Shown piece by piece: positions 7,621-39,559 of a stretch of 39,990 nucleotides of DNA. The notes under the pieces were generated by a model. It made no database searches. It saw only the letters and a program-made list of their open reading frames with translations, and was not told where the DNA came from. A program made the position numbers and the translations under genes. Numbering within the stretch: the stretch's first letter is position 1; each line of letters opens with the position of its first letter. Where the stretch lies: positions 18,167,457 through 18,207,446 of the forward strand of contig NC_069002.1 in the NCBI RefSeq assembly GCF_001194135.2, in the 5' to 3' direction. This DNA comes from Octopus bimaculoides (taxonomy: Eukaryota).

Positions 7621-7659
7621 TATATATATNNNNNNNNNNNNNNNNNNNNNNNATATATA

Positions 7660-8596: not shown

Positions 8597-8802
8597 TCAC
8601 ATTATATTCGAGGGTAGACATTCAAGTGCTTCAAAGCACTCAGCTTCCTCCAGAGCTTTCCTCAATACTTCAAATGTACGATGTTCTGGACGACAACCCA
8701 TGAACCATTTGTGCAGCGTTTGGAAGCTCTGATTCAAACTGTTAAAAGGATTGTCCTGCATGATATTTTCCAGGTCAACTTGTTTAACTCCTAATTCCCT
8801 TC
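8597..8802 (-). CDS. Exon 11 (terminal): rest of death domain, TGA stop at 8597-8599
   Basis: Acceptor aatcttttgcag|GA. (G)[67 protein letters not shown]; has the death-domain L..W and T...L..AL pattern. Confidence 0.85.
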
Positions 8803-12249: not shown

Positions 12250-12347
<98 letters not shown>

Positions 12348-15300
12348 TAACCATTGTTTCAGCAGCGAACCAAAATATTCAACTTGGATAAAGACAGTCC
12401 CTGATGGATGTCCTTCTGCAACATCTTTGCACTAAATAAACATCTCCAAGTTTTACAATTTATACAAAAATGTATTTATCTTTATTAATAATCTGTATTT
12501 TATTATTGTGACACATTCCTATCATCAATGCACACTTGGTGAACACTGTGGCTTTGGACAGCATTTTTATACTTTCTATAGCGGTACCATGTAATGAATG
12601 GTTCAATATTTACATCAACAACAGACTAAACTAACCTTCCTATATCTCCTTTCACCATTAAGATAACCTTCATATTCTAATCTAATAATTCTGCAATTAT
12701 CTCAATTAATTATCACTTGAAGCTGTCCCTCACTTGAAGCTGGTTTTGTTTTGTTTTTCTTATATATGTTGCAAATCTATGACATGGCATTGTCGCCACT
12801 CCTGTAGACTTCACTAATTAACATTATTCTCATCTTCCATTTACTTCCAATGTCAAACATGCTGGTCTCCAAAGTTCTAGCCACAAGCGCATATCATAAT
12901 CCTTCAAGTAGGATAAACATACACCCGTTCTCTTTCTTAAACGTTGCTGCTTGTAATCTTCAATTCTAATTGCCCAGATCACGGTTCGTCAGACTGTCTA
13001 ATGATTGAGGAAATATTTGAAGATATTTCAAAGTCATTCCGTTTCCTTAATGAAGCAATTTTCTTTCCAGGTGTGCAATGTTTACATCTATGCAGGTGGA
13101 GCAGAAAGTTATATCAAGTATCCTAAAATATTGTACCTTCACACAAAACCTCATTAATTACATATAATTGTTATTTCATACATTATTGCAGTGAAATACC
13201 TAAAATTGTACATACTGATACTCATGACCACTATTCTATGCATCAAACAATGTCTCCACTTTCAATGTGATGGACCTCAAATGTGTGAAAATTCAATTAC
13301 CAACAAATTTGAGGACACAAAAGATATGCATTCACAGAAGGGTTTAACTCACAGAAACTGTCTTTCTGATGTCATTCTTAATATAAGAACAACCTTACAA
13401 GGAATACGCATCCCAATTAACATCACTAATACTCTGCCTCATTTTTCATAAATGCTAATTGAGACAAACTAATTAAAAAATGTCACTATCATGCTAAATA
13501 AAGTATATCTAATTAGTGTCGCATAAACATAGAGAAAGGTTTCACAACAGTTCGTTTCCTATGGAATGAAGTCAGGATCAATAATATCCGTATATCCAGG
13601 CAGTGAGCTGGCAGAAACATTAGCACACAGGGCGAAATGCTTAGCGGTATTTCGTACGCCGTTACGTTCTGAGTTCAAATTCTGCCGAGGTCGGCTAATT
13701 AAGTACCAGTTACACACTGGGGTCGATGTAATCGACTTAATCCTTTTGTCTGTCCTTGTTTGTCCCCTCTGTGTTTAGCCCCTTGTGGGCAATAAAGAAA
13801 TAACAATAATATCTGTATATTACTGGGCTACAGAGATCGATAATCCAAGTTTGTAGGGATGTGGTCCTGTACCCAAGAAAAAAAACAGGGGATAAGTAGA
13901 AGGTAACAAGTATTAAAGTATTAGGTGAAAGTTGAAGAGGATACTGTGACAAAATGAGATTACATTTCAGATATACACACATAACCTTTCCTCGTAAGGC
14001 TCCCAGATTACAACAGAAATCTAGTTAAATAATAACGACAATAAGTGATCAGTAATCACACTCGCCAACGACATCAAAACATGCTCGAGGACCTATGGAG
14101 TATACAAAGTAGTCTCCACTAAATGTAGGGCATCGCATGTAGGGAGCACTACTAGGAAACAACACATCTGAATAAAGGAGAGTAGTCACACGGTACACTT
14201 CAATGGAGGACCACCTTAGTACCAAACTCAAAATTTTAAAGTTTCCATCGAGGAAAATGAACGCAACAGGAGAAATCTCAGAATTATGGAAGAAATTGAG
14301 ACCAGCCATGAACAACATGAAGGAACTTCACAAAACCTCCTTCCTTCTCCCTCACCTTCACACACATACACACTTCTGAGCAACAACCTTTTCCAACTAC
14401 GACTTTCTCCAAATGTCCTGAAGAAGGGATCTTCAACCCGAAATGTAGAAACACAAAGTAAAACTGCAAATTTGTTCTCTTTATTTTTCCTTGTATTTTA
14501 TAGTTTACTTTGTACCTTCTCATATTGTCCTGGTCTTACACAACAAACAGTTTTACTGTTATAACTCACAATGCTTTACCAAAACCACGTCAAAAATGCA
14601 AAACAAACAAAAGCTTTGTCATTAACTCTTATGTTTACTCCTAACCAATAATATATTTTAGTTTCCTGTGGCAATATCAACTCTATTGCATATTCTAATT
14701 TATCCATATCACAAACTAGGCAAACCTCTCTGGATATTTTATGATATTCCAATAATATCTCAGATAGGATTATTATACAGCTAACATTTCAAATGGAAAT
14801 TAGGAATGGAACCTGTTCTTAGTCATTTTGGCAAACAATATCACTCAGCAGAAGGTAAAACTTAGAGAAATCAGTTAAGCACTTTAATTTATACTCACCA
14901 ACTTTCTGTGATGAACTGGATGTGCTGGGTGTACCAGATGTACTGTGTGTACCAAATGTACTGTGTGTACCAGATGTACTGGGTACACCCGATGTGCTGG
15001 GTGTACTGGGTACATCCGATGTGCTTGGTGTACTGGGTACATCTGATGTGCTGGGTGTACTGGGTGTAGGCTGTAACACTTTCCGGATCTTCTTCATAAA
15101 GTATGAAGTCACTAAAATAGATAATAAAATGTTATAGTTTGCTTGAAGCATTGTATACGATGTGTAACGTTAAAAGAGATGCAAGGCTAAACAATGCAAA
15201 ATGAAGTGTAAGATGAGGTAACGAAAATTAAAAGTAAGTTACCTGGTAATCTTTGTTTTGTTTTGTTTTATTGTTGTTGTTGTTCTTTTATCTGCCCAAT

Positions 15301-18300
15301 ATTTCGGGTCCTAAAAGTCCCTTCATCAAGGCTTAAGGAACTTTCATTGGATAATGTTCCAATTTCCTGTCTTTGGGATAAGATTTTGAATTTGATTAAA
15401 TTTTTACTTAAGTCGTTTTCAATCATTTTTCATGGTTAATTAGCTTTCCACGTGAATGATATCAATTGCTTTTATAGTATTTTGCAAAATTCTATATTAG
15501 CTTGAAAACAACTTCAGAAAAAAAATTTAATCAAAATCAAAAAGAGAGGAAAGTGGAACCAACGAAAGCTCCTTAAGCCCTGATGAAGGGATTTTTAGGA
15601 CCTGAAATATTGGTCAGATAAAAGAACAACAGCAACCACAATAAAAAAAAAATCAAAGTTTATTTTTATGCCACAACTATCTAAGTAATAGGTAATGCTT
15701 ATAACATTATTGAGTACAATAATACTTGGACATATTCTATTATTGGACATATTCCATATACTTGGGCATATTCCATATACTTGGACATATTCTATTGTAT
15801 ACCATCAACTTCCGGGCCACTCTTTAAACTTGCTTTCGTTACGCAGCTATATACTTGTTTCTTGCTGGTATTTGATTCCTGGTTTGTTGAGTATTTCAAA
15901 CAATCCATGAGTAGGAATGGTTAATCTCATAGCTCTCCTGTATCAGCCCATCTAGTTGATCTTGAGTGCATTTTAGCCATCCATTCTTAGCATCTGCAAA
16001 CAGCTTCTTAGTAAGCACATAAGAGTTTTTAAAAAGATACTCTCAAACCATTTGCTATCTTTTCTTTCAATAAGTCTGATATATCTTTGCATAAGTTAGA
16101 GAGGAAGGGTTAATCTTCTTGTGGAGATGACAATCTTTCTAGTTCATGTGCCACAATAAAATGTACTTGGAACCCTTTATAATGCGGTTGGTGTTAGGAA
16201 GGACATACCACCATAGAAAAGTTAGAATGTTTAAGTGAGATGTGCTCCTCAAACATTCAATGTTGGCAGCAACTCTAAAAAAGAACAGGCTTGGACAGTG
16301 AACACCCGTCCAGTCCATGAAAGCACGGAAATCAAATGACAAGTAATGAGGGTGATATCATTTACTGTGATATCATTTACTGTACTGCATGGTGCAACCA
16401 GTATATATCTGGAAGAGACAGGGAGAGGGAAAGACCAAGAGAGAAAGAGATAGGCAGAGGCAGATTGAGAGAGGGGAGAAAGAGAGAGAAAGAGAGAGAC
16501 CAATTGTTTTTTTTTTCAGTAGCAAACTAGTCTTCTACTTGGTTAAAGACCATGTTTAGTGGATGTAGCGATAGATTTGCTATCATGGAAAATGACAGGC
16601 TGTTCGCATTTGGATCACTTTATATCATAAGACTGCCAGATTATGACAGACACCTGGTTAATCAACAAGAAAGATTATTTATCAGTAATCAATAGGTTAG
16701 CAAAAACAGAAAACAAACAAAAAAGTTGTCCTTAACTCAGTTGTTTACCCACTAAACTAGACTATATTTTAGTTGCTTTAACGATAGACAATATTAAATT
16801 TATTACATGTTTTAGTTTATTACTAACTATTCTAACCTCACGTGATATTGTACATTTCGATAATATCTTTAATAGCATTACTAAATGACTAAACTTTCAA
16901 ATGGAAATTAGAAATGGAGCTTGTTCGCAGTCATTTTGACAAACAATTTAGTTTGTCTGAAGGTAAAACTTAAATGAGATTAATTAGTTACTGCTGTTTT
17001 ATACTCACTCTGACGTAGCGTGGATGTCCTGCGTGTAGGCTGTGACACATCAACTGGCTCTGCCACCGTCTGGACTTCCTTGTCTAACAAATTTGGTCCA
17101 GCTGAAATAAATATTTTCAAGTTTTATTAATTATATTAAAATATATTTTATTATTGTGAGACATTCCTATCATTAATGTTCAACTAGTGACCACCATGGT
17201 TTAGGACAGCATTTTCATACTTTCTAAAATGGTACCATTCAATGGCTCAATATTTAGGCCCACAACAGAATAGTCTAAAATTTCTAAATGTTTTCTTACA
17301 TCTCTTCCTACAATCTTTTTCCAACAAAATCTCACAATGCTGCAATTATGCTTCAAACTTTTGTATTGAGTACTACAGTATATAACCTATTGTGAGACAG
17401 TCTGGGTACATACCCCAGTAAGAGATGACATCTCATATCAAGCAGCAGACTACTGTAACTATTTGAGATCTTCATAATATGATAAATCATAAGGAATTTC
17501 GTTAAAAGATGTTGGAACTTTGTAAAGATGTTGGAACTATCCATACAAGCTTTCATCAATTACCAATATTCACAGCCACACACGACTTTTAATAGTCAGA
17601 CTCTTTAAAGTTGGTCCTTAAACTCACAGTTGATATTTTCTGATTGAATCACCTACTTCATCAAACCTAACACTGATGTACTTGTAAGTAGTATTGTCTT
17701 TAATTATCAACTTCCGAGACACTGATAAATCATTAATCATTTCTAATCACTCACAATTGACTATCAAAAAAGATGGTGTGTACTGAAAGGACATTGGATT
17801 ATTTATAGATATTTCAGATAGTCAGCATTTATCTTTCAGTATCCTTCCTTAAAAAGGTACTGTCTATAAGACAGTACCTTTTTAAAGACAAAGTTTAGTT
17901 GATGCGGTGATACACATCACAGAGAAACAACACTTGAAACCACATTTAACATACGTCTGAGAGATTATGATAGACCTGGGTCTACATAACAACATGAAGT
18001 ACATTATTCCATACCAATGAGACAAACAGACATATCATCATTAAAGAGTATTCTTACCAAATCTATTTTTGCATATAACAATTTGCCGACACACGAGGCA
18101 TCGTTTAGGTGAATTCTTTGGACAGCATTCTCTGCATAACACAATATGCTCACAAGGTTCAAATATCACCAGGGCCTCATTAGTTTCACACCATCGACAT
18201 CTGTAGAACGAAATATAAACACATCTCAACAATAACATTCGTTTATAACAAATATTACATTGTGTACATGTTTACAGAAAAGATTATTATGAGTGACCAG

Positions 18301-21300
18301 AGTGAGATGCGTGGCTTAGTGGTTAGTGTGTTGGAGTCATGATTGTAAGATTGTGGTTTCGATTCCTGGACCAGGAGATATGTTGGGTTCTTTAGCAAAA
18401 CACTTCGTTTTTTATTTGCCCTCCATACAAACCTGTCTCTTGTTATAACTGAGCCCCGGTTCATTAAGAAAACCACTGAATCTGCCACATATGATGTAAT
18501 GGGTGTATCTGAAGAAATCATTTATCTGCAAGATTTTTCTTATAACTTGTCCACTTCAAATGTGTTTCTCCTAAAAAAATATTCTCTGCCTCAGTTGATA
18601 GTTTCGAAACCCAAACCAGTTTGATTCACCTTCTACTGAGGTCAGCGCATACCGTTTAGCCCCTGTTAAAGACGGGTATGATAAACTGTTTATTTAGCTC
18701 GTCCTCGTTTACCACCCGATAACACCTGAAGTTACATATTGTTGCTCACACCATATAGAATAGGGATGCAAACTGGTCTAAGAATATTGAACCAACAATG
18801 GACAACAATAGAAAAGCTACAGGCAAGTACATAAGAACAATACGTTGTACTCTATAAATTATGACAGGCTTAACTAATTTTCAAATAGAAAGGAAATTTA
18901 AATCGATTAAAATCAATTGAGATTATCGAAAATAAATTCTATTCAAAAATATAGCTAATCGTCAGATCGTAAGTAGAACAATAATTAGATATATATATAT
19001 CTGTCTCAACCAACAATAAGTACCAAATGAATTAATATGAAATACTTATTATATAAAGATAGAAAAATTATTAAAAATATCATAATATCAAAATAATAAC
19101 CATTCAATAATCATCCCTTCATCCATTATAATAACATGTATATTATATACAAAAACATCTTACATAAATCATCATTGTTTTAAATTATCATTGTTTTAAA
19201 TACAANNNNNNNNNNNNNNNNNNNNNNNNNNNNNNNNNNNNNNNNNNNNNNNNNNNNNNNNNNNNNNNNNNNNNNNNNNNNNNNNNNNNNNNNNNNNNNN
19301 NNNNNNNNNNNNNNNNNNNNNNNNNNNNNNNNNNNNNNNNNNNNNNNNNNNNNNNNNNNNNNNNNNNNNNNNNNNNNNNNNNNNNNNNNNNNNNNNNNNN
19401 NNNNNNNNNNNNNNNNNNNNNNNNNNNNNNNNNNNNNNNNNNNNNNNNNNNNNNNNNNNNNNNNNNNNNNNNNNNNNNNNNNNNNNNNNNNNNNNNNNNN
19501 NNNNNNNNNNNNNNNNNNNNNNNNNNNNNNNNNNNNNNNNNNNNNNNNNNNNNNNNNNNNNNNNNNNNNNNNNNNNNNNNNNNNNNNNNNNNNNNNNNNN
19601 NNNNNNNNNNNNNNNNNNNNNNNNNNNNNNNNNNNNNNNNNNNNNNNNNNNNNNNNNNNNNNNNNNNNNNNNNNNNNNNNNNNNNNNNNNNNNNNNNATA
19701 TATATATATATATACACATGTATATATATAGATGTATATGTATACGTGTATATGTAAAGCTGTATATGTATAGATGTATAAGAGAGCGAGCAAAGCTACA
19801 GGAAAGCAAAAGATGAATGATCACAATAAGCAGTCAGCTACCCTACCCAAGTCGTTACTACTCCCAGATGTAGGATTCCTCGCCACACAGGTGACAGGCA
19901 CAGCTGTAAGATGCATTATGGATCTATAGGAATTGGAAGAGTGTGACCCAACTGAAACATTAACAACTGGAAGTGTCACCTCTGGAAGTGTCACCTCTGG
20001 AAGTGTCACCTCTGGAGTTTGAAAATGACCACTATACCGAAAGGTAACTGGACAGAAAAAATTTATAATCTATAAATGTCTTTCAATAGCCAGTCACTCA
20101 TCTGGGAAGGCCTTGAAATCAATGTTACCATAGGGGGACTATGTGTGACCCAGTGATAATAAGAAGACTCAAAGGGAGTCTGAAACCAAATAACTTTACT
20201 CAACACTTTGCAACTGAATCAGTGGAGGCAAAGATGCCTCTCATTTACATGATAATTTATGCGCCACATTGCAGAAATCACAATCTAAGTATATCTCAAA
20301 GCAAACTGTTACACTGTTGTACCATTGAATTACAAATAACGTTAATCATTTATGTTCAGGTAACCCTATAGCTTCCAAGAGTACATCTGTATTCGTCTAT
20401 GCTTAGATAAAATGACTAAATTGTGGGTGTTAAGTCCCCATGAAGGGGTCTTTCTAACTTCTAAGAAGATGAAATTTTAGAAATATTACTTTTAGAAGCA
20501 TTGAGATGTCTTAGAAAGTTAAAGAAGTGATTTTAAATTTTCAAACGCAGGATAATGCTAATAATATAGCCTGAACAGGATAAGCTACCCCTATTTTGCA
20601 GAAAAAAGTGTAGGCGGCCAGCTATGAGTGTGTTTGTAGAATATTTTCTTATGAAACCTTTCATAATAATGACTGTTTGGAACAGAGAAGAGAAAAACAT
20701 GTCAGTTTACAGATAAAGCCAACTTTCTTTTAGTACCAACTTCAAAATGTGTTTATTCACTGCATTATTTAGTACTACATTTTCCCGGAGGTTACAAACC
20801 TTTAAAATAGGGAACTACAAGAAATAGGCGGGGTTGAACAGTGTCAACACAACCAATCATGTGAATGTAATCAAAGTAGTGTTCTTTCTTTGATTACATA
20901 ACAGCTACATATTGTCTATTGTTCTTCTTACTATTGTTGTGTGGTCTTTGGTCAAGACACTAGTGAGAGTATAATGTATTGGTAGAATTAAAACTGAACA
21001 AATAAACATGATTATGCAAAAAATAGAAAATGTACTGGTTTATCTTGTCATTGTCAAGGAATACTTACAGTAGTGATGGGAATAATTTCTTTAATTTTTC
21101 TTTCAAATTTTCATTCTTAACTAGGTCCAGTGGAGACACACCGTTTTTGTTTTTATGATAAAAGTCACCCCCGTGTTGGGCCAGATAACTGGCAACCACT
21201 GCGCCGCTGCACCTGCATCCTTGTCTCAATTTCAGCTTAGTGCAGTACTACAAATGATGAAATATAAAATGATAAGTGCAATATAACACAAATATACATT

Positions 21301-21794: not shown

Positions 21795-24700
21795 AACAGC
21801 GTGGCAATGAACAATGTTAGTTATCAGAAAAGAGAACACCTTCAAGATACCAATTTCTTCAGATAAAACAACAAAATCAACACCACACAGATACATCCAA
21901 ACATATCAACGTTTCCAAAATTAATAAAGAAACATCTTTGGATGATGAAAGTAAAGTAAAGGAGGCAAGAATTAGGTCACAGTTGAGGCAGCACACCAAT
22001 ACATTGTAGTTGATAAATTGTTCAAACTGTTAATCCGATGGACAATTCTAGTCATGCGTTGGGGAGGAGGGGAGTAGATAACTATCAAAGTAAGTTCTTC
22101 TCAGTAAAGTAGATGTTACAACAACAAACAGATGACCATCAACTGTCTGAAATATTCTTTTCTACCCTTGGCACAAAGCCCGAAAATTTGGGAGAGGGAG
22201 CCAGTCGATTAACACCGGTGCTTAATTTATTGACCCTAACAGGATGAAAGGCAAAGTTGACCTCGGCGGAATTTGAACTCAGAAACTGTCTGAAAATATT
22301 CAAATATTCTTTTCTACTCTAGGCATAAGGACCAAAATTTTTGGGGAGAGGGCCAGTCAATTTGATCGACTACAGTACGCAACTGGTACTTAACTTATCG
22401 ACCCCGAAAAGATGAAAGGCAAAGTCGACTTTGGTGGAATTTGAACTCAGAAACTGTCTGAAATATTATCAAACATCTGCAGTGACCTTTGTTCATATGA
22501 AAATCAAAGAGTTACTTAAATTCTGTAACAGTTGAAAAGTAAATACCATCAGATCTACTGATGGTTAGGTGTCAATGGATTTGTATTTCCACATAAGTGC
22601 ATGCAAATGTTATACGCACATACATATGCAATTGTACAAACAAAACTTAAGTACAGGAACACATACAATGAACCTACTTTATTTACCCACTCTTTAGTGT
22701 GTTCTATTGGCTTAGAGCATAATTTATTGCGGCTTATTTTCAACAAATTTTATTCAACAAAAACATCCTAAAATGATTATTCCGGAACATATTCATCATC
22801 TACTTCAATTACTGCTTCCCATTTGCTTGGTAGGCGGTCAGACCACCATTTAAAGAAATTTTTGTTAAATATTGTTATTGTTTTTGTTGAATAAAATTTA
22901 TTGAAAAAAACTACAATAATTATGCACCAACCCAATAACATTCAACATAACATATACACAGTGGTTATATGTTGAATACAAGAGTGTGGTTGAGAGCTGT
23001 TTCAGTCAGGATTCTTCACAGAATGGATTGGATGTTTTTATTTTGGCACCTGTACTATAAAGGCTGTTATCTGTTATGTCACACAGACCTCTTTTCTATC
23101 TCGTATCATTGTTATATGTGAATAATATCTGCTCTCATCAATAGGTGACCTCTCCTTTAAACTGTGATGGCTGGGTTTCAGTGGCCAAAATCCGAGATAG
23201 GTTGCCTTCTCTACAGTGGAGAAGCCATGCTTTTGAGGGTGGAAAAAGTTGGAATATTGTTTGTTAAATAATATAACTAGGGTTATCAGGACAGAATGGA
23301 TTACTTGATGATAATGGAAGAGGTGGTTGGTGGGTGTGAATTGAGACATGATAAGCAATGTCTGTCTGTTTGTCACTCTCTCTCTCTCACACATACAAAC
23401 TCACACACATACGCATATCCCCCGCCACACAAGCAAACAAGTAAACAAGCAAATTTTAAAAACTTACCTTATCTAAAGTAGCTATGGTTTCCACCTCAGA
23501 ATGAAACATCTTTCTCTCCACAGTAAGGTGCAAACAATTGTTGCCATCATTGTCGACAGCATTTACGTCTGCTCCCCGTGAAATTAAATAGTTAATCATT
23601 CCGAGGTGGCCCCCGGAGACGGCTTCAAGGAATGGTGTCATTTTCTTATGGTTCCTAACATTCAGTTTCATGGAATCCTTTTTGGAGATAAAAGTAGAAA
23701 ATGAAAATTTACATGAAAATTAGGTTAGATATGAATGTGTCATTACTGTCTTCTACTGGGTACTTGGTCGAACTGATCATGTGCATTTGTTGTTTGTCTG
23801 TGAAGTCAATTTTAGTTTCCTCTATAAATTGCTATGGCTTTGTATTAAAGACATCAAATCTTTTAAGTATTAAGATAAAATACTAGAGTGTATATTATAC
23901 ATATGTGTGTGTGTGCATTTGTGTGTGTGTGCATTTGTGTGTGTGTGAGTGTGTGTGTTTTAACTAACCTGGGACAGCATCAAAGTTACCACAGCATAGT
24001 GTTGCCTGTAAGTTATTAAAGGAGAAAAGAAAAATATAAAACAATTAATAGCATTCTGATTGAGATTATTATTAATTATTAGGTCATTAATTTATGAAAA
24101 CAAATGTAAGCAGATCACTATTGCCTAATTACATCAATAATTATATAGACATACATACATTTAGTCAATATCCACTCTACACAGTAGATCAATTATACAG
24201 GGGTTGGACAAAATAATGGGAACACCTAGCATCTTACTTGCATAATTGTGAAATATCTATAAAACCGTCAAAAGCTTGTTTATTTTTATGTTTTTTTAAA
24301 ATTTATTATTAGTGTTGCTTAATATGTTTTGCTAAAATTGCTGTTTCTGTTCAGATATCATCAGAAAAAAGGTAATTAAAATTCATTAAAATGACAGATC
24401 TATCGGACTTTCAAAGAGGTCAAATTGTTGGTGCTCATATGGCAGGCGCTAGCGTAACGAAAACAGCCAAAATGTTTGGTGAATCAAGAAGTACTGTTTT
24501 GAAAGTAATGACAGCCTTTAAGAAAGAGGGAAAAATCTCGTCGAAACAAAACTCCGGAAGAAAACCAAAACTTTCAGATAGGGGCCGTCGGACTCTTACA
24601 CGAATTGTTAGAAAGGATCACAAAAGTACAGCTCCCAAAATTACTGTAGAGTTTAATGACCACCTTGAGAACCCAGTTTCCACAAAAACTGTTCACCGGG

Positions 24701-27700
24701 AGCTGCACAAAACCGAATTTCACGGGAGGGCTGCAATCAGAAAACTACTACTTTCAAAAACAAACGTTGCAAAGCGTTTAGAGTGGAGTAAAAACCTACA
24801 GAATCAGTCCCGAGAACAGTGGAAGAATGTTATTTCTTGGACGAATCGTCCTTTACCTTATTTCTGAATACCGGCCGAGTATACGTGTGGGGACAGCCAA
24901 GAAAAGCATTTGACTCAGACTGCCTTTTTCCACGTGTTAAACATGTAGGAGGATCTGTGATGATCTGGGAGGAAGGGCTATATCTTGGAAATCTGCTGGC
25001 TCAATGGTTTGTCTTCATGGCAGAATTAATAGTCAAGACTATTCAAGTATTTTATCTGATGGTCCTACCCAATATTAAAATAAATTTGTTTGAAATTTTA
25101 AGGTGTTTCCATTATTTTGTCCAATCCCTGTATATACACACTTGAGTCAGCTCAACAATGTATATGTGGTACAACTGTTATATAGAAATGAAATTTAGGA
25201 TAGAGGAGAAGATGTAGAGGTGATTATATTGACTCCAGCACATGACTGGTATCGTATTTTATCTGTCTTTCCAGAAGGAAAGGCCAAATTGACCTCGGTA
25301 GTATCTGAACTCGGAATGTAAAGGGTCGTAAATAAATACCACAAGATATTTTGTCCAACACTAACAAATACCCAAGAACAAGAGAGGTTGAGAGTTTCTT
25401 AAATGAACCAGTGGATATTACTGGTACAGATTATATCAGCTACAGAGTGACATTAGTTACTCTGACACGATTTAAACACTGTAAGGGATGATTCTGTATT
25501 TAACCCTAGGTCAGAGGAAAGAGATACATTACGAGTGACGGGGGTGAAAAGGGGTGAAAGTAAGAAGACAGACGATCTGAACCAGTAACAGTAAGGGAGG
25601 ATTAGATGAAGTGAAGAAAAATCTAGTCATGTGATAACAACAACAATAATTATGGTGATGATTAATTGATGAGGTAGATTACAGTGTCATTACAGTGTGA
25701 AAGAGAGTTGAAAGACGATGGCCCATGGTGGGATATGAATGACTCAATAAAATAAACAGATTTTGATATTCCTGATGAATGTGGTCTTACCATTGAACTG
25801 CTATATGTAGAGGTGTGTTACTATTATTGTCAACCGCATTGGCATCAATGCCATCTTGTTGTAGTAGAAGTTCAACAGTATATGTGTGTCCATTCAGACA
25901 GGCCTGATGCAGAGGTGTCCAACCATCTTTGTCCACCACACTGACATTAATGTTAGTGTGTTGTAGTAGATGTTCAGCGGTCTCCATGTGTCCATACAGA
26001 CAGAGCAGATGTAGAGATGTGCAACCATTTCTGGCCACGGCATTGACATTAATGCCAGTCTGTTGTATTAGAAGTTTAACAGTGTCTGTGTGGCCATGCC
26101 TACAAGCCAGGTGTAAAGGTGTCCAGCCATCTTTGGCCACCACACTAATATCAGTGTGCTTATGTTGTAGTAGACACTTAACAATGTCTGTATGTCCATT
26201 CAGACACGACAGATGTAAAGGTGTGCAACCATTTCTGGTCACAGCATTAGCATCAATGCCAGTCTGTTGTAGTAGAAAATTAACAGTGTCTGTGTGTCCA
26301 TATCGACAGGAGAGATGTAGACATGTCTCATAAACATTGTCCACTTCACTGACATTAGTGCCAGTGTCTTGTAGTAGAAGTTCAACAATGTCTGTGTGTC
26401 CATTCATACAGGACAGATGTAGAGGTGTCCAACCCTCTCCGGCAACCATACTGACATCAGAGCCAGTTCGTTCTAGTAAAAGTTTAACAGTGTCTGCGTG
26501 CCCAGCCTGACAGGCCAGGTGTAAAGGTGTGTAGTGATCATTGGTCATCACATTGGCATTAATGCCAGATTTTTCTAGTAGAAGTTTAACCGTTTCAATG
26601 TGTCCATTCATACAGGCCAGATGTAAAAGTGTGTTACCATTATAGTCTACTACAGTGACGTCAGTGTCAGTTTCTTCTAGTAGAAGTTTAACTGTGTCTG
26701 TGTGACCATTCAGACAGGTCAGATGTACAGGTGTGTCGCCATCATAGTCCACCACATCGACATCAGTGCCATTCTGTTGTAGTAAAAGTTTAACAATGTC
26801 TGTGTGTCCATTCAGACAGGCAAGATGTAGAGGTGTGCAACCATCTTTGGTCACCGCCGTGACATCAGCGCCATTCTGTTGTAGCAGAAGTTCAGCAGTG
26901 TCTGTGTGTCCATTTAAACAGGTTAGATGTAGAGGTGTGTTACCATTATTATCTACAACCATGACATCAGTACCATTCTGCTGCAGCAGAAGTTTAACAG
27001 TGTCTGTGTGTCCATTATAAGAGGCCCGATGTAAAGGTGTCCAGCCATGATTATCCACTACCATGACATCAGTGCCAGTCTGTTGTAGCAGAAGTTTAAC
27101 AGTGTCTGTGTGTCCATTCCGATAGGCCAGATGTAAAGGTGTCCAGCCATCATTGTCCACCACCGTGACATCAGTGCCAGTCTGTTGTAGCAGAAGTCTG
27201 ACACTGTCTGTGTGACCATTCAGACAGGCCATATGTAGAGGTGTCTGACAATCATTGTTCACCACCTTGACATCAGTGCCATTCTGTTGTAGCAGAAGTT
27301 TAACAGTATCTGTGTGTCCATCTTGACAAGCCAGATGTAGAGGTGTGTCGCCATCATTGTCCACTACACTGACATCAGTGCCATTCTGTTGTAGCAGAAG
27401 TTTAACAGTATCTGTGTGTCCATCTTGACTAGCCAGATGTAGAGGTGTGTCGCCATCATTGTCCACTACCCTGACATCAGTGCCAGTCTGTTGTAGGAGA
27501 AGTTTGACACTGTCTGAGTGTCCATTCAAACAGGCTAGATGTAGAGGTGTCCAATCGTATTTGTCCACCGCAGTGACATCAGTTCCAGTTTGCTGTAGTA
27601 AAAGTTTAACAATGTCTGTATGTCCATTGAGACAAGCAAGATGTAGAGATGTGTCACCATCATTGTCTACCACGTTGACATCAGTGCCAGTCTGGTGTAG

Positions 27701-28145
27701 TAGAAGGTTAACAGTGACTGTGTGTCCATCTTGAGAGGCCAGATGTAAAGGTGTGTTACCATCATTGTCCACAGCACTAACATCAGTGTCATTCTGTTGT
27801 AGTAGAAGTTTAACAGTGTCTGTGTGTCCACGTAGACAGGGAAGATGTAGGGGTGTCCAACCATCATTATTTCGTTGATTGACCTGAAAATATAAGCAAT
27901 AAATACTTTAAAGATGGTGTGTACTAGATGGTGTGGGGTACAAGAATTGTAAAAAAATCTCAGAAAGTGAAAGGAAAGAATCAAACTAATAAACAGCTGG
28001 AATGAATGTGGGGAAGAACAAATAAATGAGGTTTGTATATATACACTCACTTACACACGCACACACACACACACACACACATTTATATACCCTCTCACAT
28101 GCAAATATACGCATCCACACGCACAGACACACACACATATATACA

Positions 28146-28212
<67 letters not shown>

Positions 28213-29127: not shown

Positions 29128-30493
29128 NNNNNNNNNNNNNNNNNNNNNNNNNNNNNNNNNNNNNNNNNNNNNNNNNNNNNNNNNNNNNNNNNNNNNNNNN
29201 NNNNNNNNNNNNNNNNNNNNNNNNNNNNNNNNNNNNNNNNNNNNNNNNNNNNNNNNNNNNNNNNNNNNNNNNNNNNNNNNNNNNNNNNNNNNNNNNNNNN
29301 NNNNNNNNNNNNNNNNNNNNNNNNNNNNNNNNNNNNNNNNNNNNNNNNNNNNNNNNNNNNNNNNNNNNNNNNNNNNNNNNNNNNNNNNNNNNNNNNNNNN
29401 NNNNNNNNNNNNNNNNNNNNNNNNNNNNNNNNNNNNNNNNNNNNNNNNNNNNNNNNNNNNNNNNNNNNNNNNNNNNNNNNNNNNNNNNNNNNNNNNNNNN
29501 NNNNNNNNNNNNNNNNNNNNNNNNNNNNNNNNNNNNNNNNNNNNNNNNNNNNNNNNNNNNNNNNNNNNNNNNNNNNNNNNNNNNNNNNNNNNNNNNNNNN
29601 NNNNNNNNNNNNNNNNNNNNNNNNNNNNNNNNNNNNNNNNNNNNNNNNNNNNNNNNNNNNNNNNNNNNNNNNNNNNNNNNNNNNNNNNNNNNNNNNNNNN
29701 NNNNNNNNNNNNNNNNNNNNNNNNNNNNNNNNNNNNNNNNNNNNNNNNNNNNNNNNNNNNNNNNNNNNNNNNNNNNNNNNNNNNNNNNNNNNNNNNNNNN
29801 NNNNNNNNNNNNNNNNNNNNNNNNNNNNNNNNNNNNNNNNNNNNNNNNNNNNNNNNNNNNNNNNNNNNNNNNNNNNNNNNNNNNNNNNNNNNNNNNNNNN
29901 NNNNNNNNNNNNNNNNNNNNNNNNNNNNNNNNNNNNNNNNNNNNNNNNNNNNNNNNNNNNNNNNNNNNNNNNNNNNNNNNNNNNNNNNNNNNNNNNNNNN
30001 NNNNNNNNNNNNNNNNNNNNNNNNNNNNNNNNNNNNNNNNNNNNNNNNNNNNNNNNNNNNNNNNNNNNNNNNNNNNNNNNNNNNNNNNNNNNTTTCTAGA
30101 AGTTGTCCATAGGTTCCGGCCCGAAAGTCGTCTTGAACAGGCGGGTCAGGTATTCCTCGTCAACGCCCAGGTTCACCCTCCACAAATCCCCTATAGAATG
30201 CTTTGGTTGTGTTGCAGTCACTCAATGTCGACCCGGGACGGCATAGTTGCTGGAGAGCAACGCGACACTCGCAGTGCCATTCGCTCTTTCTCGGCCTCTT
30301 TTTGATCCACGACTGCAGTTCGGTCATGGAGACGAGTTGCGGGAAAGCGCCCCTCACAAACGGCAACCACACCTGTTCACCATCGTCTATGTAGAGCCGG
30401 AGATGTCTAGATGTCTAGATAGATAGATAGACAGACAGACAGGCAGGCAGACAGACAGACAGATACATAGATAAATAGATAGATAGATAGATA

Positions 30494-30563
<70 letters not shown>

Positions 30564-33500
30564 TGGCGAGCTGGCAGAAACGTTAGCATGCCGGATGAAA
30601 TGCATAGGGGTATTTCGCCTGCCGTTATGTTCTGAGTTCAAATTCCACCGAGGTCGGCTTTTATCCTTTCAGGATCGATAAATTAAGTACCAGTTACGCA
30701 CTGGAGTCGATGTAATTGACTTAATCCCTTTGTCTGTCCTTGTTTATCCCCTCTATGTTTAGCCCCTAGTGGGCAATAAAGATCAGTCTTAATCACGGGG
30801 CGTACCCCATGATTTCTGTTGTCTTGAGAGCCAGAGATGATAGGAAGCTCTTTCAGCAACGCTACATACTAACCTCTTTAGTGCTTTTGCTTTAGAGTGA
30901 CGAGCACCAAGTCGGTATAACGAAGGAAGGAGGGCATGCGATGCGAAACCTCTACAGCCCACTTCTACCGGCCACACTGAAGTCGTCCGACCGTTGTTAT
31001 CACAAAGCAGTTTCAGTTCCTTGTATTTCCTCATTTTCCTCTCATGTGAAGTCTGCATGTTGCTTTCATCACAAACTGTAAGTTCAATCAGTGCTATTGT
31101 CTTCCTCTGCTCGGAAAAGATTAATATGTCAGGCCGAAGGTTCGTGACGGCAATCTTTTCTGGGAAGATCAATTTCGTGTCCAAATCTGCCATGATTGTT
31201 CAGTCGTTTACTAAAGTCAAAAGCCCCGACCGTCTCTACATTGAGCAGAGAAATTGGACGGAAATCAGTTATTATCTTCTCGTTGGATTTTGCCGATTTC
31301 TAGATGTACACCCCTTCGGCCACTCTCCATTGGATTGGAATTCTCCTGGTCCTCCACACAACGGCCATAAATCTCCAAATCAAGCGAAGTAGGCGTGGGC
31401 AACTTTTGTACATCTTATATGGTATCCCATTTTATCCAGGAGCTGATGCATTCCTAGTCCGTCTCAAAATGTCTTTCAACTCCTTAAACGTCGCGGCCGA
31501 GTCGGCAAAAGGGTGAGAAGGGGGATCAGGCTGTATTACACCTTCCCACTCTTCAAAGTCACCCGTCATAGTCGATGAGTAAGTCCGGTGAAGATGATCA
31601 TTCAGATCTTCTCTCGAGCAGTTGAGATTAATCCTACAACTTGGATCCAGAATCTCCCTAGTATAACGGAAAGGTTCTTTCATAAATTTCCGCCTCCCCG
31701 ATTTCCTTTCCCGCCTCCTCGTACATGCTCTCTCTGCTTTGCGTAGTTTTAAAATCTCGCTGTGCAGCCTTTCACCAAGGTCCTTTAACCATCATTCTCT
31801 TCCTCGGGTGCTGAGCGGATTCTCTTGTGAAAAGACCTCTTTTCTTTGCGTAGGTGCTTAAGGCGCACAGAACGTCGATTAGGTTGAATCTCATGAGCAG
31901 ATTTTTCTTTAGCACCAAAACAATCCATAGCAAATGCGTTCACCATCTTCTCATAGGTGTGAAGTTTCTGATCAATGGGACCATGCAATAAAGGTGACAC
32001 CACTCTCTCAGCCTCTTCATCAAATGCCTCCCAGTCCCGTTTATTAGACATAGGTGGCCAATTTATACAAGGGCGGCAGTCTAACTTTGACAAAAGCAGA
32101 CGATCTTGAATCCCATGGCGGTCGGTAAACATTGTGGTTATCCTCCAAGTTTCCGTCTTGCCCCGATTTACTTTTGCTATTTAACAAAATACTGTTCAAA
32201 GACTCACCGCACTGCGTTTTGCCCTGATGAATGCGAACTTCCCTCTTCCCTTTAAACTGGCGATGGCATATTTCACATACACCTTCCTCAAGTAAAGGCT
32301 CCAAGTCACTAATCCCCAAATCGTTGTTGAACGCGAAATCCTGGTCTAATTCCGTGAAATCACGGGAGCTTGTTAAACCGGACGACCTCCCAGCCGGTAT
32401 GAAATTCTCAAAAGTAACTTGATCCATTGAAATTTAGAAAACTAGACTTTCCTAGTAGTCAATCAGTTTGTTCTTGACAGTCATCCAGACTTTCCTAGTG
32501 GTCACTGAATCCTCACAATCAGAAGGAGATGAAAAATATCATAAACTTGGTCAAAAAAAGCAAACACTCCGGCAGGAGATAGCCAAAATTATATATACAT
32601 ATAAATACATATATATATATATATATATAAATAAGAAATATAAAGATATATAAAAAAAGGAACAAAAATACTGGAGATTCAGTATATACCACGTGGCAAA
32701 ATTATGAGTTGAAAATATGTGGAAAACATATAAAAAGTGGAAGAGAAATGCTTTCGTTTCATATAGTTTAATATCTTTTTATAAATATATACATATTGCA
32801 TGGATGTCGTGAAATCCTACCGGTTTTTACTATTTAAATTAGCTTTTCAAGGGACATTGTACTCTAATCAGTTCTCGTGACAGAGGGGTTTCGTCATTTT
32901 GGATGTTTGAAGAATAAGAAGAATGAGTCTAGTGAGTGAACCAAGCGAAGCAACAGGCGGCAAAGGGGACAACTAGATCCTTAGTATTTTCTTTTTTAAA
33001 GTCAAATTTGTATATTGAGGTGTGGTCTGTACTTTTGTATGAACAGGTTTTCTTTGTTTAGGCGTTCTTGTACTGAGATTAAATCTTTGCATTGGTATAA
33101 ATGGGAAGATATGAAAATTCGGCGATTTTTTACTTGCGCATTTGTCGATATACCCGCTCAGTGCTATCTGCCTGTATTGAGGGAAACGAATCTGTTCTTT
33201 ATGTAGCGTGACTCTGCGTCTCAAAGTAAGGTTTGTTTGGCTCACATAATTGTGACCACAACCTGAGCAGGTTAGTACATAGAAAAGGTTCTGGGAAGCA
33301 CATGTGAAGTTGGTTTACTTGAGAATTTTTGTCCTTGCTGGAATGTGAATTCCGAGCCTTAGGTTAAGTATGGGCATGTACCACAATTAGGTCGTCTGCA
33401 TTTTTTAACTGTTGATATCATTTGTATTGAGTATAGTTTTGCATTTGTTAGGAATCTCTTGAGTGATTTATGTTGTCTTTTGCATTTGAGGAGTTTATGT

Positions 33501-35179
33501 GTATTTAAGATGTTGTTCATTTTCGGGTTTTGAGTGAGCAGAGGGAGATTTTGTATGATTGTGTTGTATGCTTCATTGTTTCTGGGGTTGTGGGTTGATA
33601 TGCATGGGAGTGATTTAAAGTGAGGTATTGTGTTTTGTTTTGTTGTCCTTGTTCTATAAGTGCGGGTGGGTATTGACGCTCAATGAGTGCTATTTTGAGT
33701 TCTTGTTCCCGAGTGGTTATGTCAGATACAATTGTACAGATTCTTTTTGCTAGATTGAATGGGATATTTTTTTGGGTGTGTTTAGGATGGCATGAACTGA
33801 AAAGGAGATACTGTTTTGAGTCTGTTGGTTTGTAGTAAATGTCGGTTGCAATTTGGTTGTTGCACTTTTTTAAAATCAAAATGTCCAGAAATGGGAGCTG
33901 TTCCTTGCTATATTCCATTGGGATTTATATTATTCAGTGTGGATTTGAAATCCAGGAGTTTATCATAGGTTTCATTCCAGATGGTAAAACAATCGTCTAG
34001 GTACCTTTTCTAGTTTTCTCTTATATACTGGTGGAATGGGGGTCCGAATTTTTGGAGTGAAAGTTCATATAGGATAGATTCAAAGAAACCCATTATTAGG
34101 TTCGCAAGTACAGGCGCTGCTTTCATTCCCATCGCAATACCGCATTTTTGGCAGTAGTCTATTGTATCGAATAGGAAGTAATTGTTTTGTAGGATGAACT
34201 TCAGGGATTCAATGACAAAAGTCTGGTTTATGCGGTCCGGGAGAACTTCGGGGTATTTTTCTAATCAGAATTTTATTGCCTCTATTCCGTAGTCATGTGG
34301 AATGTTAGTGAAGAGGTTGATAGCATCAAAGGAGACTAATAGAGCTTCTTGTCCAGATCGTCTCTCATGAAACTTTTAATGTATCTGAGGAAAGGTTTCA
34401 ATAGAATGTGCAGAAAGTTGCTTAGGCGGTGTGTTTCACAGGCTGGGCCCACTGTAATAGGCCTTAATTTTAAGTCTATTAGTCTCCTTCGATGTCATCA
34501 ATCTCCACACTAACATTCCACCGGTTGGATTTTACGACATCCATATAATATGTATATATTTATAAAAAAGATATTAAACTATGTGAAACGAATACATTTC
34601 TCTTTCACTTTTTATGTTTTCCATATATTTTCAAACTACACACACACACACACGTATATATATATATATATATACTCACTAACCTGTAAAATGTTATTTC
34701 CTTTACTACTCAACAGGACTTCGACTACTTCTTTACAGTTCTCCTCTACAGCAAGATGGAGAGGGTTGTTGCTTGATGAGTCCTGCTTGTTAACATTCGC
34801 TCCACTGGAAACCAGGGATTTCGCAGCATCATGTTTATGGCTGAAAGTAAAAAATGTAAATATTACAGAAATCCACGTAATAATTATATTAAATGTACAT
34901 TCATATTCAATACATAATAACTAAATGCACAAAAATGTATGTATATTATACCGGGTATATATATTTATATATTTGATCCTTTATATTGAACACTCAATAT
35001 TTCATCTACATTCAATACTTTCTTTCATGGTGCCATCCATTTTTATTTTATTTTATTTTATATTATATATTGTGTATTATATTATATATTATATATTCCA
35101 TATTCTATACCCCACATTGGTTCTGCAGGAATATAAATAAAACAAAAAAAACAGACAGTGTTGGAACTCTTTTAAACAA

Positions 35180-35221
<42 letters not shown>

Positions 35222-38200
35222 TGAGATTCAGATGAATTGGGTACTTAAGTTGAGGCACCATAAATTAGTGCAGTATTATCCATGCAATTTCAAAATAAGG
35301 TGCAAATAAAATTAAAATATGCAACAGGATATCCAGAGGTGATGCAGTAAACCGTTTCAAGCAGCTCCATTTAATTGAACAATGCAATCATCTGAAATGG
35401 ATCTAGAGAAAATTTCATATGCCAATATTAATATATATGTATATAAACAGTCTCATAAAATTAAAAAGTCAATAAAAGAAAATGGAGAAGAAAAATTAAA
35501 AAAAAAAGCTTGGTTTGTTTTATTTGTAATACAATTGGAAAAGTAATGCAAAGATAAACAACTTGAGAGAATGTGTCAGAAGAATGCAGAGCCTGTGGAA
35601 CTTGAAACGAGACAGTGGCATACATTGTGACAGAATGCTCCAAGTTGGCACAAAAATTCCCCAAGGAGGCACAACCAGGCTGTAAACGTTTTACACAGGA
35701 AACTGTGCCAGAAATTGGGATTTGAAACTGGAAACACATGGTACGATCACCGAGCCGAAAGAGTATCATAGTCAGAGAAGTGTAAGATTTTGTGGGACTT
35801 TTTTTGTGGGAAATTAGAAAATAATAGACCAGATATTACAATCATAGATTAAGAAAAGCAAAGTTGCTTACTTATCGACCCATCATGCCCATTTGATTCC
35901 AGGATCATAAAGAAAGAGGAAGAAAAACAAAGGAAATACAATCCCTTAAAATTTGAAATAGGAAGAATTTGGATCCGGCGAACAATAAAGGTCGTGCCTA
36001 TAATAATTGGTGCGTTGAGAACTCTAAGCCAAGATATAGACAAATGGTTGAAGGAGATTGAAATAGAATGCCCACTAGAGTTCCTACAGGATGTTTGTCT
36101 GTTAAGGACAGCAAGGATTATCAGGAGGGTTCTAAGCACTTGAAAGACTGCTGAAAACTTGTGGATCCCTAAGGTTACAGGTCGTCGTAACTCGCTATCC
36201 ACGTAATTCCTACAAGGAATAAGACCGAACCTGAGACAAACCAAAATATTTTATAATAATTTCTATTGTAGGCACAAGGCCTGTAATTTTGAGGGGAGGG
36301 GAAACCGATTACATTAAACACCAGTACTCGACTTGTAGAATTACAAAATGATAAGAGGAAAAGATAACCTCAGCAAGATTTGAACTCTCAAATAATAACT
36401 ACAATACTAAAAACGAGCAATCTGGATGTTTTTATTTCAGTATTCACTTACTAGTTTCTGTCATTCAGGTTTGATAGATTATTTTTCTCCTTTCCTTGTA
36501 TATGAAGTGAATTGTTATTTGTTCAAAAACAAAATTTCTTCAAATTGCTATATTTTCAACATTAGGGATTAATTACGTTTCTGATTTTTGTTTAAATTTC
36601 AGTTCTGCCTCTATCCCCACCCCCACAGAACTAAGGAATAATACATTAACATACTCACACTTTTGTATTCACACCAACCTTCCGTAAGTTTTTAAACTTG
36701 CTAAAAATAACGGCCAAATCAACTGGGTTTAATATTTGGTTAATGAGAGGAGAGAACTTGCGTGCATGCATGAATGTACACGCACACGTACACACATAGA
36801 TACATACACACATACACATGCACACACACATAATACATACATGCATACATACATGCATACATACATACATACATACATGCATACATACATACATGCATAC
36901 ATTCATGCATACATACATACATACATGCATACATACATACAGACATACATACACACATATATACATACATGCATGCATACATACATACATACACGCATGC
37001 ATGCATACATACATACATACATATACACAGGCATACATACACACATACACACATACATACATGCATGCATACATACATACATACACACAGACATGCATGC
37101 ATACACACATACATGCATACATACATATACATAATATACACACACATACATACATGCATGAATGCATGCATACATACATATATACATACATGCATGCATG
37201 CATGCAAACATACATACATACATCCATGCATGCATGCATGCATACATGTACGCATGCATGCATACATACATACATTCACACAAACATACACACACATACA
37301 TACCCACATACATACACACATACATACATACATACACGCACGCATACATACATACATACATACATACATGCACACATACATATATACACGCATGCATACA
37401 TACATACATACATACATGCATAGACAGGGTTGTCTTTACAATGTCATCTACTGCAGTACTTTGTTTGGTCTTTTGCAGTTCTCTTCTTCCTCCGGAACTT
37501 TCACAGAGAAGATGATAAGATATGTAGTTCTGCCCTCATTTAATTACTGCAGTAGATTACTGTAATTAGGTAAGTGATAGAGAATGAGGGAATGAAGGAG
37601 AAGATTTGATGAAGAAATTTGGAAAAGGGTCTAATTGTGTATATAGACATTATATTTCTTGAAATTCAGGTTTTTCGTGATGGGCAGGTTTTCTTGAGCA
37701 TCTCAGTTCGCCATTCATCCTAGTCCTTTGTCATCTTCCCAAGATCAGATTTCACTACTTCATTCGATACCTTCCTGGGTCTCGCTCTTCCACAGTTTCC
37801 GTCTTCAGTGATCGAGATGTTTTATGCAGCTCTCCTCATCCATACACATCACATGACCTCACCGGTGCTCTCTTCTTTCTTACACAACACATCTGAGTCC
37901 TTTTAAGCCCAATTTTTATTTTAACACATTTGCCCTGTCATATGTACACACTGATATTTCACATCCAGTACAGGATGCTAGCTGCATTCTCTTCTAGTTT
38001 TGCATGTCTTCTGCATTCATGGCCCATATTTCTCTACCAAATACAATTGTTGTTTGTACACAAATATCATACATTCTGCCTTTCACTTTTGTTACCAACA
38101 ATGAAACCTTTTGTTACCAACAGAGATAATAACTCTTTGAACTTCCTCCATTCTTTTCTTATTCTTGCAACTCTGTTAATTTTTATGTGTTTTTTTCTTT

Positions 38201-39294: not shown

Positions 39295-39375
<81 letters not shown>

Positions 39376-39559
39376 AGTTGAAGAAAAAGTAATGGGTGAG
39401 AAAAGAGGGATACGAAAGAGAAAGGAAGTTGAACATAAAAACGTAGACAAACATACACACACATATATCATGTTGGAGGGGTTTTGTCAGTCAATGTTTG
39501 CAGTAAGAGTTACTGTGCTCCTATATTAGTCAGGGGACTTTATACATTTACAGAGGCAC

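Follow-up and report, generated by a model that had tools for sequence, protein, structure and literature searches.

What a single exon encoding 20 ankyrin repeats of identical length might be for is the question raised by a 39,990-nucleotide stretch of the Octopus bimaculoides genome (contig NC_069002.1, positions 18,167,457 to 18,207,446, forward strand), which was analysed over its whole length and is referred to below as the window. A preceding reading of the letters alone (the sequence-only reading) had proposed that the residues which vary between the repeats occupy the positions randomised in designed ankyrin repeat proteins (DARPins), and that in-frame reshuffling of the array gives rise to a natural recognition repertoire resembling DARPins or the variable lymphocyte receptors (VLRs) of lampreys and hagfish. 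The results presented here suggest that the array is probably the greatly expanded central exon of an Octopus-specific gene with the domain order ankyrin repeats, 34-residue array, ankyrin repeats, RING and death domain, and that it constitutes a germline-evolving recognition module. The exon is delimited as follows:

25791 to 27883, minus strand: array exon (exon c), a single exon of 2093 nucleotides, delimited by Tandem Repeats Finder, translation and motif spacing, AG and GT borders, Pfam Ank and Ank_2 matches, and AlphaFold2 (AF2) modelling with Foldseek

The array exon encodes 20 full 34-residue ankyrin repeats and the first nine residues of a 21st, which is completed by the next exon. 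Its 5' end is in phase 0 and its 3' end in phase 2, and the exon is bordered by an acceptor AG (27885-27884) behind a pyrimidine tract and a donor GT (25790-25789, GTAAG). Tandem Repeats Finder recognises one array at 25805-27868 with a period of 102, 20.2 copies, 77% matches, 0% indels and a score of 1968, while the minus-strand translation from 27883 to 25791 comprises 697 stop-free codons, in which T-x-[LV]-H motifs recur at residues 9, 43 and onwards to 689 with a spacing of always exactly 34. Repeat finding and motif spacing agree on the 20 repeats of exactly 34 residues without indels counted in the sequence-only reading, and the borders it had given for a single-exon array coincide with the AG and GT exon borders. 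The array is real and its regularity lies far beyond chance at these coordinates; the open reading frames on the plus strand within it are by-products of the repeat. Likewise reproduced exactly were the two residue series of that reading, one for the position that precedes TPLH (W,N,D,W,D,D,Q,W,W,N,C,D,N,Y,W,E,C,W,C,W), the other for the two residues that precede GH (LR,QD,LN,LN,QD,QD,LN,RN,YN,LN,LN,LN,MN,QA,MN,RY,LN,RH,LY,LN). Five columns of the unit (T4, H7, G13, H14 and L21) are invariant across the repeats, but the description of the scaffold as near-invariant was somewhat overstated, as the mean pairwise identity among the 20 repeats is 62% at the amino acid and 77% at the nucleotide level. 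Amino acid identity amounts to 72% among repeats 1-12 and 52% among repeats 13-20, compared with only 31% among the repeats of fish ankyrin-1. The pairs 5/6 (95% nucleotide and 91% amino acid identity) and 8/9 (88% nucleotide identity) both look recent; the remaining pairs are 64-86% identical at the nucleotide level and no higher-order period was seen.

The ankyrin identity of the repeats is borne out by matches to the Pfam families PF00023 and PF12796 (Ank, E 2e-190 with 20 stretches; Ank_2, E 3.7e-259) and by a phmmer match of the array to ankyrin-1 in the PDB (3.9e-175). An AF2 model of a seven-repeat fragment (repeats 3-9), built with a 16-row alignment, shows two helices per 34 residues with a predicted local distance difference test (pLDDT) score of 97.3 and a predicted template modelling score of 0.92. 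Foldseek matches this model to the DARPins 6mol_A (template modelling (TM) score 0.93, root mean square deviation 1.2 A) and 6moi_A (TM score 0.87), with 44-47% identity, and to ankyrin-1/B/G (TM scores 0.85-0.90, those for ankyrin-1 being 0.86-0.90). The modelling shows that the array is predicted to fold as a continuous, DARPin-like ankyrin solenoid. A model of all 697 residues from the single sequence was all-beta (pLDDT 69) and was discarded as a single-sequence artefact. The unit departs from the canonical 33 residues by one additional residue, the 34th, located in the loop that follows helix 2 (LLLQQ-[T/N]-GTDV), as seen in alignments with PDB ankyrins; it is a length variant, which does not exclude it from the ankyrin repeats, and units of 34 residues fall within the range reported for the ankyrin repeats of fungal NOD-like receptors (NLRs) (Dyrka et al. 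2014, PMC4986451).

When the unit is placed in DARPin register, column 3 (the hairpin residue before TPLH) corresponds to DARPin position 5, columns 11-12 (the end of helix 1) to positions 13-14, columns 34 and 1 to positions 2-3 and column 32 to position 33. The six columns of highest entropy in the window array are 30, 3, 11, 12, 34 and 1, among which five of the six DARPin-randomised positions (2, 3, 5, 13 and 14; not 33) are found (hypergeometric P ~1.3e-4). The differences between the repeats are concentrated at the hairpin tip and the end of helix 1, in the concave groove, while helix 2 and the core scaffold are kept. The placement of the variation at DARPin-type positions in the sequence-only reading holds for these five positions, but not for column 32, which is conserved (V in 19 of the 20 repeats), nor for the most variable column, 30, which aligns with the framework residue Asn31 and is not a library position.

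Comparison with the paralogs shows how the array arose. Most family members contain only one or two 34-residue units at the array site; in the homologous exon or region, one unit is found in P0124, four in P0180 and seven in P0004, while the homologous exon of the locus L002 (protein P0137) is ~258 nucleotides in length and holds two. The locus L001 of Octopus sinensis, which encodes P0174, contains ten units in one exon (12460 to ~13529) with 92% nucleotide identity between the units (Tandem Repeats Finder), and the units of the O. sinensis arrays are ~81% identical at the amino acid level. Exact look-ups gave genomic loci for P0174, P0137 and P0121, but none for the window open reading frame, P0004, P0124 or P0180. 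Collinearity of the window with L001 and L002 extends through the introns, at ~70-78% nucleotide identity, and the three are therefore duplicates of one gene plan. Unit counts of 1, 2, 4, 7, 10 and 20 among the paralogs imply germline gains or losses of entire 102-bp units, the array having grown from one or two 34-residue repeats through in-frame tandem duplication of the 102-bp unit within one exon. All O. sinensis units share A18 and R30, whereas V18 is carried by 18 of 20 units in the window, where column 30 varies; these array-specific scaffold residues indicate that each array was expanded or homogenised on its own. The array is thus far from monomorphic among paralogs (1 to 20 units), and the in-frame reshuffling proposed from the sequence is supported insofar as a one-exon array differs by whole units between paralogs, and is weakened for the window, where recent duplications are few (pairs 5/6 and 8/9) and unit duplication has been mostly quiet for a long time.

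Two details of individual repeats accompany this picture. Repeat 4 of L001 (about 12790-12890) has lost three nucleotides in frame (LLL to LL) and is 33 residues long, so the length constraint seen in all 20 window repeats is not absolute in the family. Repeat 9 of the window (about 26948-27049) and repeats 5-6 of L001 share the face combination W...R.AS.YN at 91% amino acid identity, which suggests that certain repeat types have been retained across paralogs even though scaffold residues are array-specific.

Selection on the units was assessed from simple parsimony codon counts on a neighbour-joining tree of the units, from which the ratio of nonsynonymous to synonymous rates (omega) was derived; the approach assumes a repeat tree and ignores gene conversion. 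Random placement of an equal number of substitutions would be expected to introduce 6.1 stop codons into the window array, whereas none is observed (P(0)=0.002) and no indel occurs in 2 kb, so that the open reading frame of the array is under constraint. In L001, the six DARPin positions, taken as an a priori set, evolve at an omega of ~2.8 (21 nonsynonymous changes against 7.5 expected, p 3.7e-5) and columns 3, 11 and 12 at ~3.6 (p 6e-5), against 0.63 in the remaining columns, these counts being drawn from ten units on an assumed tree with conversion tracts ignored. Among repeats 1-9 of this locus, the proportions of synonymous (pS) and nonsynonymous (pN) differences are 0.048 and 0.007 in the scaffold codons, while pN reaches 0.315 in the face columns (1, 3, 8, 10, 11, 12, 33 and 34). 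Recent duplications may have been followed by selection for new specificities, or the scaffold may be evened out by conversion while selection maintains the differences on the face; by either route, the L001 pattern would point to selection for diversity of the groove.

The array belongs to a gene of at least nine exons, encoded on the minus strand over 31 kb of the window. Eight further exons (39258 to 8597, minus strand) were placed by tblastn with the best octopus match, P0004 (XP_036370063.1, O. sinensis), and are listed below, where percentages refer to identity with P0004:

39107 to 39258, minus strand: exon a, N-terminal ankyrin repeats, with the sole internal stop (TAG, 39120-39118); tblastn with P0004, splice sites
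34684 to 34840, minus strand: exon b, ankyrin repeat ending '...SSKGNNILQ', phase 0 into the array exon; tblastn (68%), Pfam Ank
23969 to 24005, minus strand: exon d, 37 nucleotides completing repeat 21; tblastn with P0004, splice sites
23468 to 23677, minus strand: exon e, more ankyrin repeats (33-residue type); tblastn (54%), Pfam Ank, splice sites
21069 to 21247, minus strand: exon f, final degenerate ankyrin repeat and spacer; tblastn with P0004, splice sites
18058 to 18200, minus strand: exon g, RING finger of the C3HC4_3 type, CRWC...C.H...C..C...C..C; Pfam zf-C3HC4_3
11390 to 11461, minus strand: exon h, start of the death domain; tblastn with P0004, Pfam, splice sites
8597 to 8802, minus strand: exon i (coding part), rest of the death domain with the stop TGA (8599-8597); tblastn (61%)

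The spliced nine-exon model has AG and GT at all junctions and comprises 3249 nucleotides in frame, corresponding to 1082 codons and a terminal stop. Pfam recognises ankyrin repeats in exons a to f, the RING in exon g and the death domain in exons h and i. The RING scores 29.0 bits against zf-C3HC4_3 (cut-off 27) with all metal ligands present (CRWC...PCEH...LCRECC...RCLVC), and the death domain (PF00531) scores 34.2 bits (cut-off 22.6) over profile positions 3-80 of 86. The exons seen encode neither a signal peptide nor a membrane anchor. The junction of exons g and h is in frame without the linker cassettes found in some paralogs: P0174, P0282 and P0137 have three to six tandem 17-residue cassettes between RING and death domain, with the sequence 'CPKSEEKAVQ..VESV' or 'CPRCREKTVKTV..ESF'. 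The L002 locus suggests one small exon per cassette, none of which was detected at 11462-18057 of the window. Judged from the paralog sequences, these cassettes would represent a second, independent copy-number-variable module of the family.

The non-repeat C-terminal part of the gene, used as query in a word-index search (E<=1e-10), matched 41 proteins, all of which belong to O. sinensis, O. bimaculoides or Octopus vulgaris except for two weak metagenome matches. Most of the 41 show the domain set Ank, zf-C3HC4_3 and Death, and they are mostly named 'MIB2-like', with 'ankyrin-3-like' and 'PP6 regulatory ankyrin repeat subunit B-like' also occurring. An exhaustive HMMER search with the RING and death-domain part against 1.84 billion cluster representatives gave 227 matches at E<=1e-3, 68 at E<=1e-10 and 19 at E<=1e-30, and the ten clusters whose names were sampled all came from Octopus (sinensis, bimaculoides, vulgaris). 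The family thus appears to be Octopus-specific and multi-copy. As all matches of the three word-index searches had ~0.65-1.75 times the length of the query, the C-terminal query missed long array-bearing relatives; the extent found is a handful of array-bearing paralogs within a family of a few dozen genes. With the array exon and the full spliced model as queries, no ortholog and no protein more than 46% identical to the window model was found among 5.8 billion database proteins, and the window gene itself is therefore not among the annotated proteins. Orthology with MIB1 or MIB2 was ruled out, since Pfam finds no MIB/HERC2, ZZ or MIB-repeat domains in full-length P0004 and P0124. The MIB proteins share with the octopus family an ankyrin block followed by a C3HC4_3-type RING, but the octopus family has a single RING and then a death domain, which MIB proteins lack. 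Nothing specific on an octopus or mollusc family with ankyrin repeats, RING and death domain was found in the literature searched, nor any description of this domain order.

The domain composition suggests how a recognition module of this kind may operate. The solenoid would be the part of an E3 ubiquitin ligase or adaptor that recognises targets, its groove binding target proteins, while the RING would ubiquitinate the target or the protein itself and the death domain may connect the protein with innate-immune or apoptotic types of death-domain signalling complex. The diversification of the groove, clearest in the younger sister array of O. sinensis, would reflect selection for new binding specificities, and the diversity would be encoded in the germline, by paralogs and possibly alleles, rather than assembled somatically.

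Several observations weigh against a recognition function of the window copy, some of which fit an ordinary structural or adaptor solenoid, where neutral slippage or unequal exchange multiplies the repeats and variability marks nothing more than the surface positions under least constraint. The functional chain from groove to RING to death-domain signalling is a prediction from the domain composition. Four of the six most variable columns in fish ankyrin-1 are also DARPin positions, which indicates that the positional bias noted in the sequence-only reading is partly generic to ankyrin repeats, and the DARPin library positions themselves were reportedly chosen as non-conserved surface positions of natural repeats. 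In the window array, the a priori set of six DARPin positions evolves at an omega of ~1.12 (p 0.24), not significantly above the synonymous rate, while columns 3, 11 and 12 reach ~1.49 (p 0.027) as a set chosen post hoc, and the remaining, scaffold columns evolve at ~0.67. These values derive from 2.92 synonymous changes per synonymous site and 2.19 nonsynonymous changes per nonsynonymous site over the 20 units, synonymous saturation (~2.9 per site over the tree) being appreciable; pairwise Nei-Gojobori values agree with the tree-based counts. The window array is also old, with little ongoing homogenisation, since its repeats are 65-88% identical at the nucleotide level apart from pair 5/6.

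The window data are suggestive of a face evolving faster than the scaffold at about the neutral rate, and diversifying selection is not demonstrated in this array. An excess of nonsynonymous change at the variable over the scaffold positions, whose absence the sequence-only reading had named as telling against it, is nevertheless found in both the window and L001, as the face evolves faster than the scaffold in each, even if the window DARPin set does not reach significance. The ordinary solenoid fits less well with the outer-face helix-2 columns (15-20 and 24), which vary as much as the face in fish ankyrin-1 but are conserved in the window array; what is unusual here is the variable face set against a conserved scaffold, with 62% identity between units as opposed to 31% in ankyrin-1. 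It fits least with L001, where about a third of the nonsynonymous face sites differ on a scaffold with so few synonymous differences, a pattern that is more than relaxed constraint alone can give. Considering also that the family is lineage-specific and multi-copy, with RING and death domains typical of immune or apoptotic signalling, the ordinary solenoid is regarded as somewhat unlikely.

A more serious alternative is that the window copy is a recently inactivated pseudogene, in which the array is a relic, the variable positions drift and the locus has no recognition function; this is a tentative reading to be reckoned with, held at rather less than an even chance. The copy may have been inactivated by the TAG at 39120-39118 (minus strand) in the upstream exon a, the only internal stop of the 1082-codon model, for which L001 has TAT (Tyr) and the paralog P0124 has Trp at the homologous residue. 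The lack of an annotated protein more than 46% identical, though three Octopus genomes are annotated, is as would be expected had annotators flagged the locus as a pseudogene, and the near-neutral rate of the face (omega ~1.1) and the weak constraint on the scaffold (0.67) are in keeping with decay. Counting against the main reading rather than for a pseudogene, ~28 N-terminal residues, by comparison with P0004, and with them the first coding exon lie beyond the window, and tblastn of the window with the first coding exon and the 17-residue linker cassettes of the paralogs gave nothing convincing. Apart from the TAG, all else is intact, with nine exons bounded by AG and GT, 1082 codons in frame, all RING ligands in place and the 697 array codons free of indels and of the stops expected from random substitutions, and a difference in omega remains between scaffold (0.67) and face (1.1-1.5). 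Any inactivation would therefore be much younger than the array. As a single T>G change, the TAG could represent an allele or an error of the assembly, or the site could be read as UGG (Trp) by adenosine-to-inosine (A-to-I) editing. If the window copy were only a decaying pseudogene, interest would shift to the intact O. sinensis relatives.

The somatic side of the sequence-only reading fared worse. Diversification within the individual, by donor-cassette conversion or recombination leading to a clonal repertoire as in the VLRs, is permitted by identical-length units in one exon, which could recombine in frame. A discrepancy in O. sinensis could also be taken to reflect a difference between RNA and reference: the annotated protein P0174 has six repeats followed by a ~30-residue stretch that represents the last repeat in another frame, whereas the genomic exon has ten repeats in frame. 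As this includes a frameshift, typical of gene-model artefacts in repeats, it is most simply explained as such an artefact, or alternatively by a difference in repeat number between the RNA donor and the reference animal. The VLRs resemble the octopus array as solenoids with concave-face residues varying between units, but they consist of leucine-rich repeats, their germline gene is incomplete and somatically assembled from hundreds of flanking cassettes, and their products are secreted or anchored by glycosylphosphatidylinositol. The octopus gene, in contrast, consists of ankyrin units and is complete and in frame in the germline as a nine-exon unit; tblastn finds no extra ankyrin cassettes outside its own exons on either strand of the 40-kb window, and its product, with RING and death domains and neither signal peptide nor membrane anchor in the exons seen, looks cytosolic. 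A VLR-like or other somatic repertoire is hence considered highly improbable. The likeness to DARPins (Binz et al. 2003) lies in the fold, the consensus-like scaffold and the shared variable positions, whereas DARPins have 33-residue units and two to three internal repeats and the octopus array is a natural array of 20 repeats of 34 residues within a multidomain protein.

For the germline-evolving recognition module, the closest precedent appears to be found in the internally conserved ankyrin repeats of fungal NLRs, with which the logic would be shared and the chassis would be different. The ankyrin (and tetratricopeptide and WD) repeats of fungal NLRs and other signal transduction ATPases with numerous domains (STAND) are units of 33-34 residues that are polymorphic in number between isolates (Podospora) and whose concave face is positively selected (Dyrka et al. 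2014, PMC4986451; Paoletti et al. 2007 is also named for these repeats). As in the octopus array, 33-34-residue ankyrin units combine a conserved scaffold with variation on the concave face (inner helix and hairpin), and, as in the octopus family, the number of repeats changes by whole units, the octopus change being seen between paralogs. Positive selection at the fungal face may have its counterpart in the signs observed in the O. sinensis relative L001, and both systems are proposed as germline-diversifying recognition modules. The octopus gene differs in that its array is joined to RING and death domains without NACHT or NB-ARC, and in that the host is an animal; membership of the NLRs was ruled out, as Pfam finds no NACHT/NB-ARC in the window model, P0004 or P0124. 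Highly internally conserved repeats are rare in animals, making up only 0.8% of metazoan repeat proteins (Dyrka et al. 2014, PMC4986451). The threshold applied by these authors is at least 85% identity between units over at least 100 residues (PMC4986451), below which lie both the window array, with a mean of 62% amino acid identity and only pair 5/6 reaching 91%, and the O. sinensis arrays at ~81%. A long run of near-identical 34-residue units (...VVKYLVEEKGADVKA...) was also observed in an unrelated metagenome protein with NB-ARC and ankyrin repeats (P0001, JGI), from which it follows that the 34-residue internally conserved ankyrin variant recurs on a STAND chassis elsewhere.

Parts of the architecture have parallels in better known proteins. 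Ankyrin repeats with a C-terminal death domain occur in NF-kB p105/p100, in ankyrins and in ANKDD1, as they do in the octopus gene, and the coupling of a RING E3 to a rapidly evolving target-binding domain is the logic of TRIM5alpha, which the octopus gene would likewise resemble. The octopus gene itself is without a Rel-homology, ZU5/UPA, B-box/coiled-coil or SPRY domain.

A bolder extension is that the array-bearing octopod genes form a germline-diversifying family of intracellular recognition proteins, with a groove under diversifying selection, individuals polymorphic in repeat number and order, and binding of non-self or altered self read out via RING and death domain. This is considered unlikely. 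The polymorphism would arise by unequal exchange inside the single exon, and RNA editing might diversify or rescue the genes further, for example by converting UAG to UIG (Trp) at 39120-39118. Cephalopods are not known to possess adaptive immunity, and their described repertoire of pattern receptors is modest. If true, the extension would give animals an equivalent of the fungal NLR repeat system built around other signalling domains. Independently of it, a lineage-specific family in which an expandable, face-variable ankyrin solenoid is coupled to an E3 ligase and a death domain would be a concrete candidate for an intracellular sensor or restriction system that evolves rapidly in cephalopods. 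Such a family would bring to animals a form of specificity, internally conserved repeats with a hypervariable face, that has been documented mainly in fungal NLRs. Natural 34-residue consensus-like ankyrin scaffolds with tolerated variable positions are also informative for repeat-protein engineering.

Long microsatellites are located near the exons (28053-28205, 23900-23958, 36789-37422 and 39298-39377), with (AC)76 occurring 170 nucleotides upstream of the array exon, (TG)n adjoining exon d, (TACA)160 within the intron that separates exons a and b, and (AG)40 a short way upstream of exon a. Four assembly gaps are present as runs of N (4269-4987, 7630-7652, 19206-19697 and 29128-30092), and Rfam and tRNA scans of the window were empty. 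A transposon remnant lies in the intron directly downstream of the array exon:

24391 to 24867, perhaps to 25145, plus strand: remnant of a Tc1/mariner transposase; Pfam HTH_Tnp_Tc3_2, E 1.7e-14

The remnant retains only helix-turn-helix domains, without a catalytic domain, and does not contribute to the gene product. Between exons b and c, the intron contains a stretch richer in guanine and cytosine (30100-33900; 44% compared with ~36%) with several open reading frames of 115-134 residues on both strands; none of these frames has a Pfam match, and the stretch may be an unclassified repeat element.

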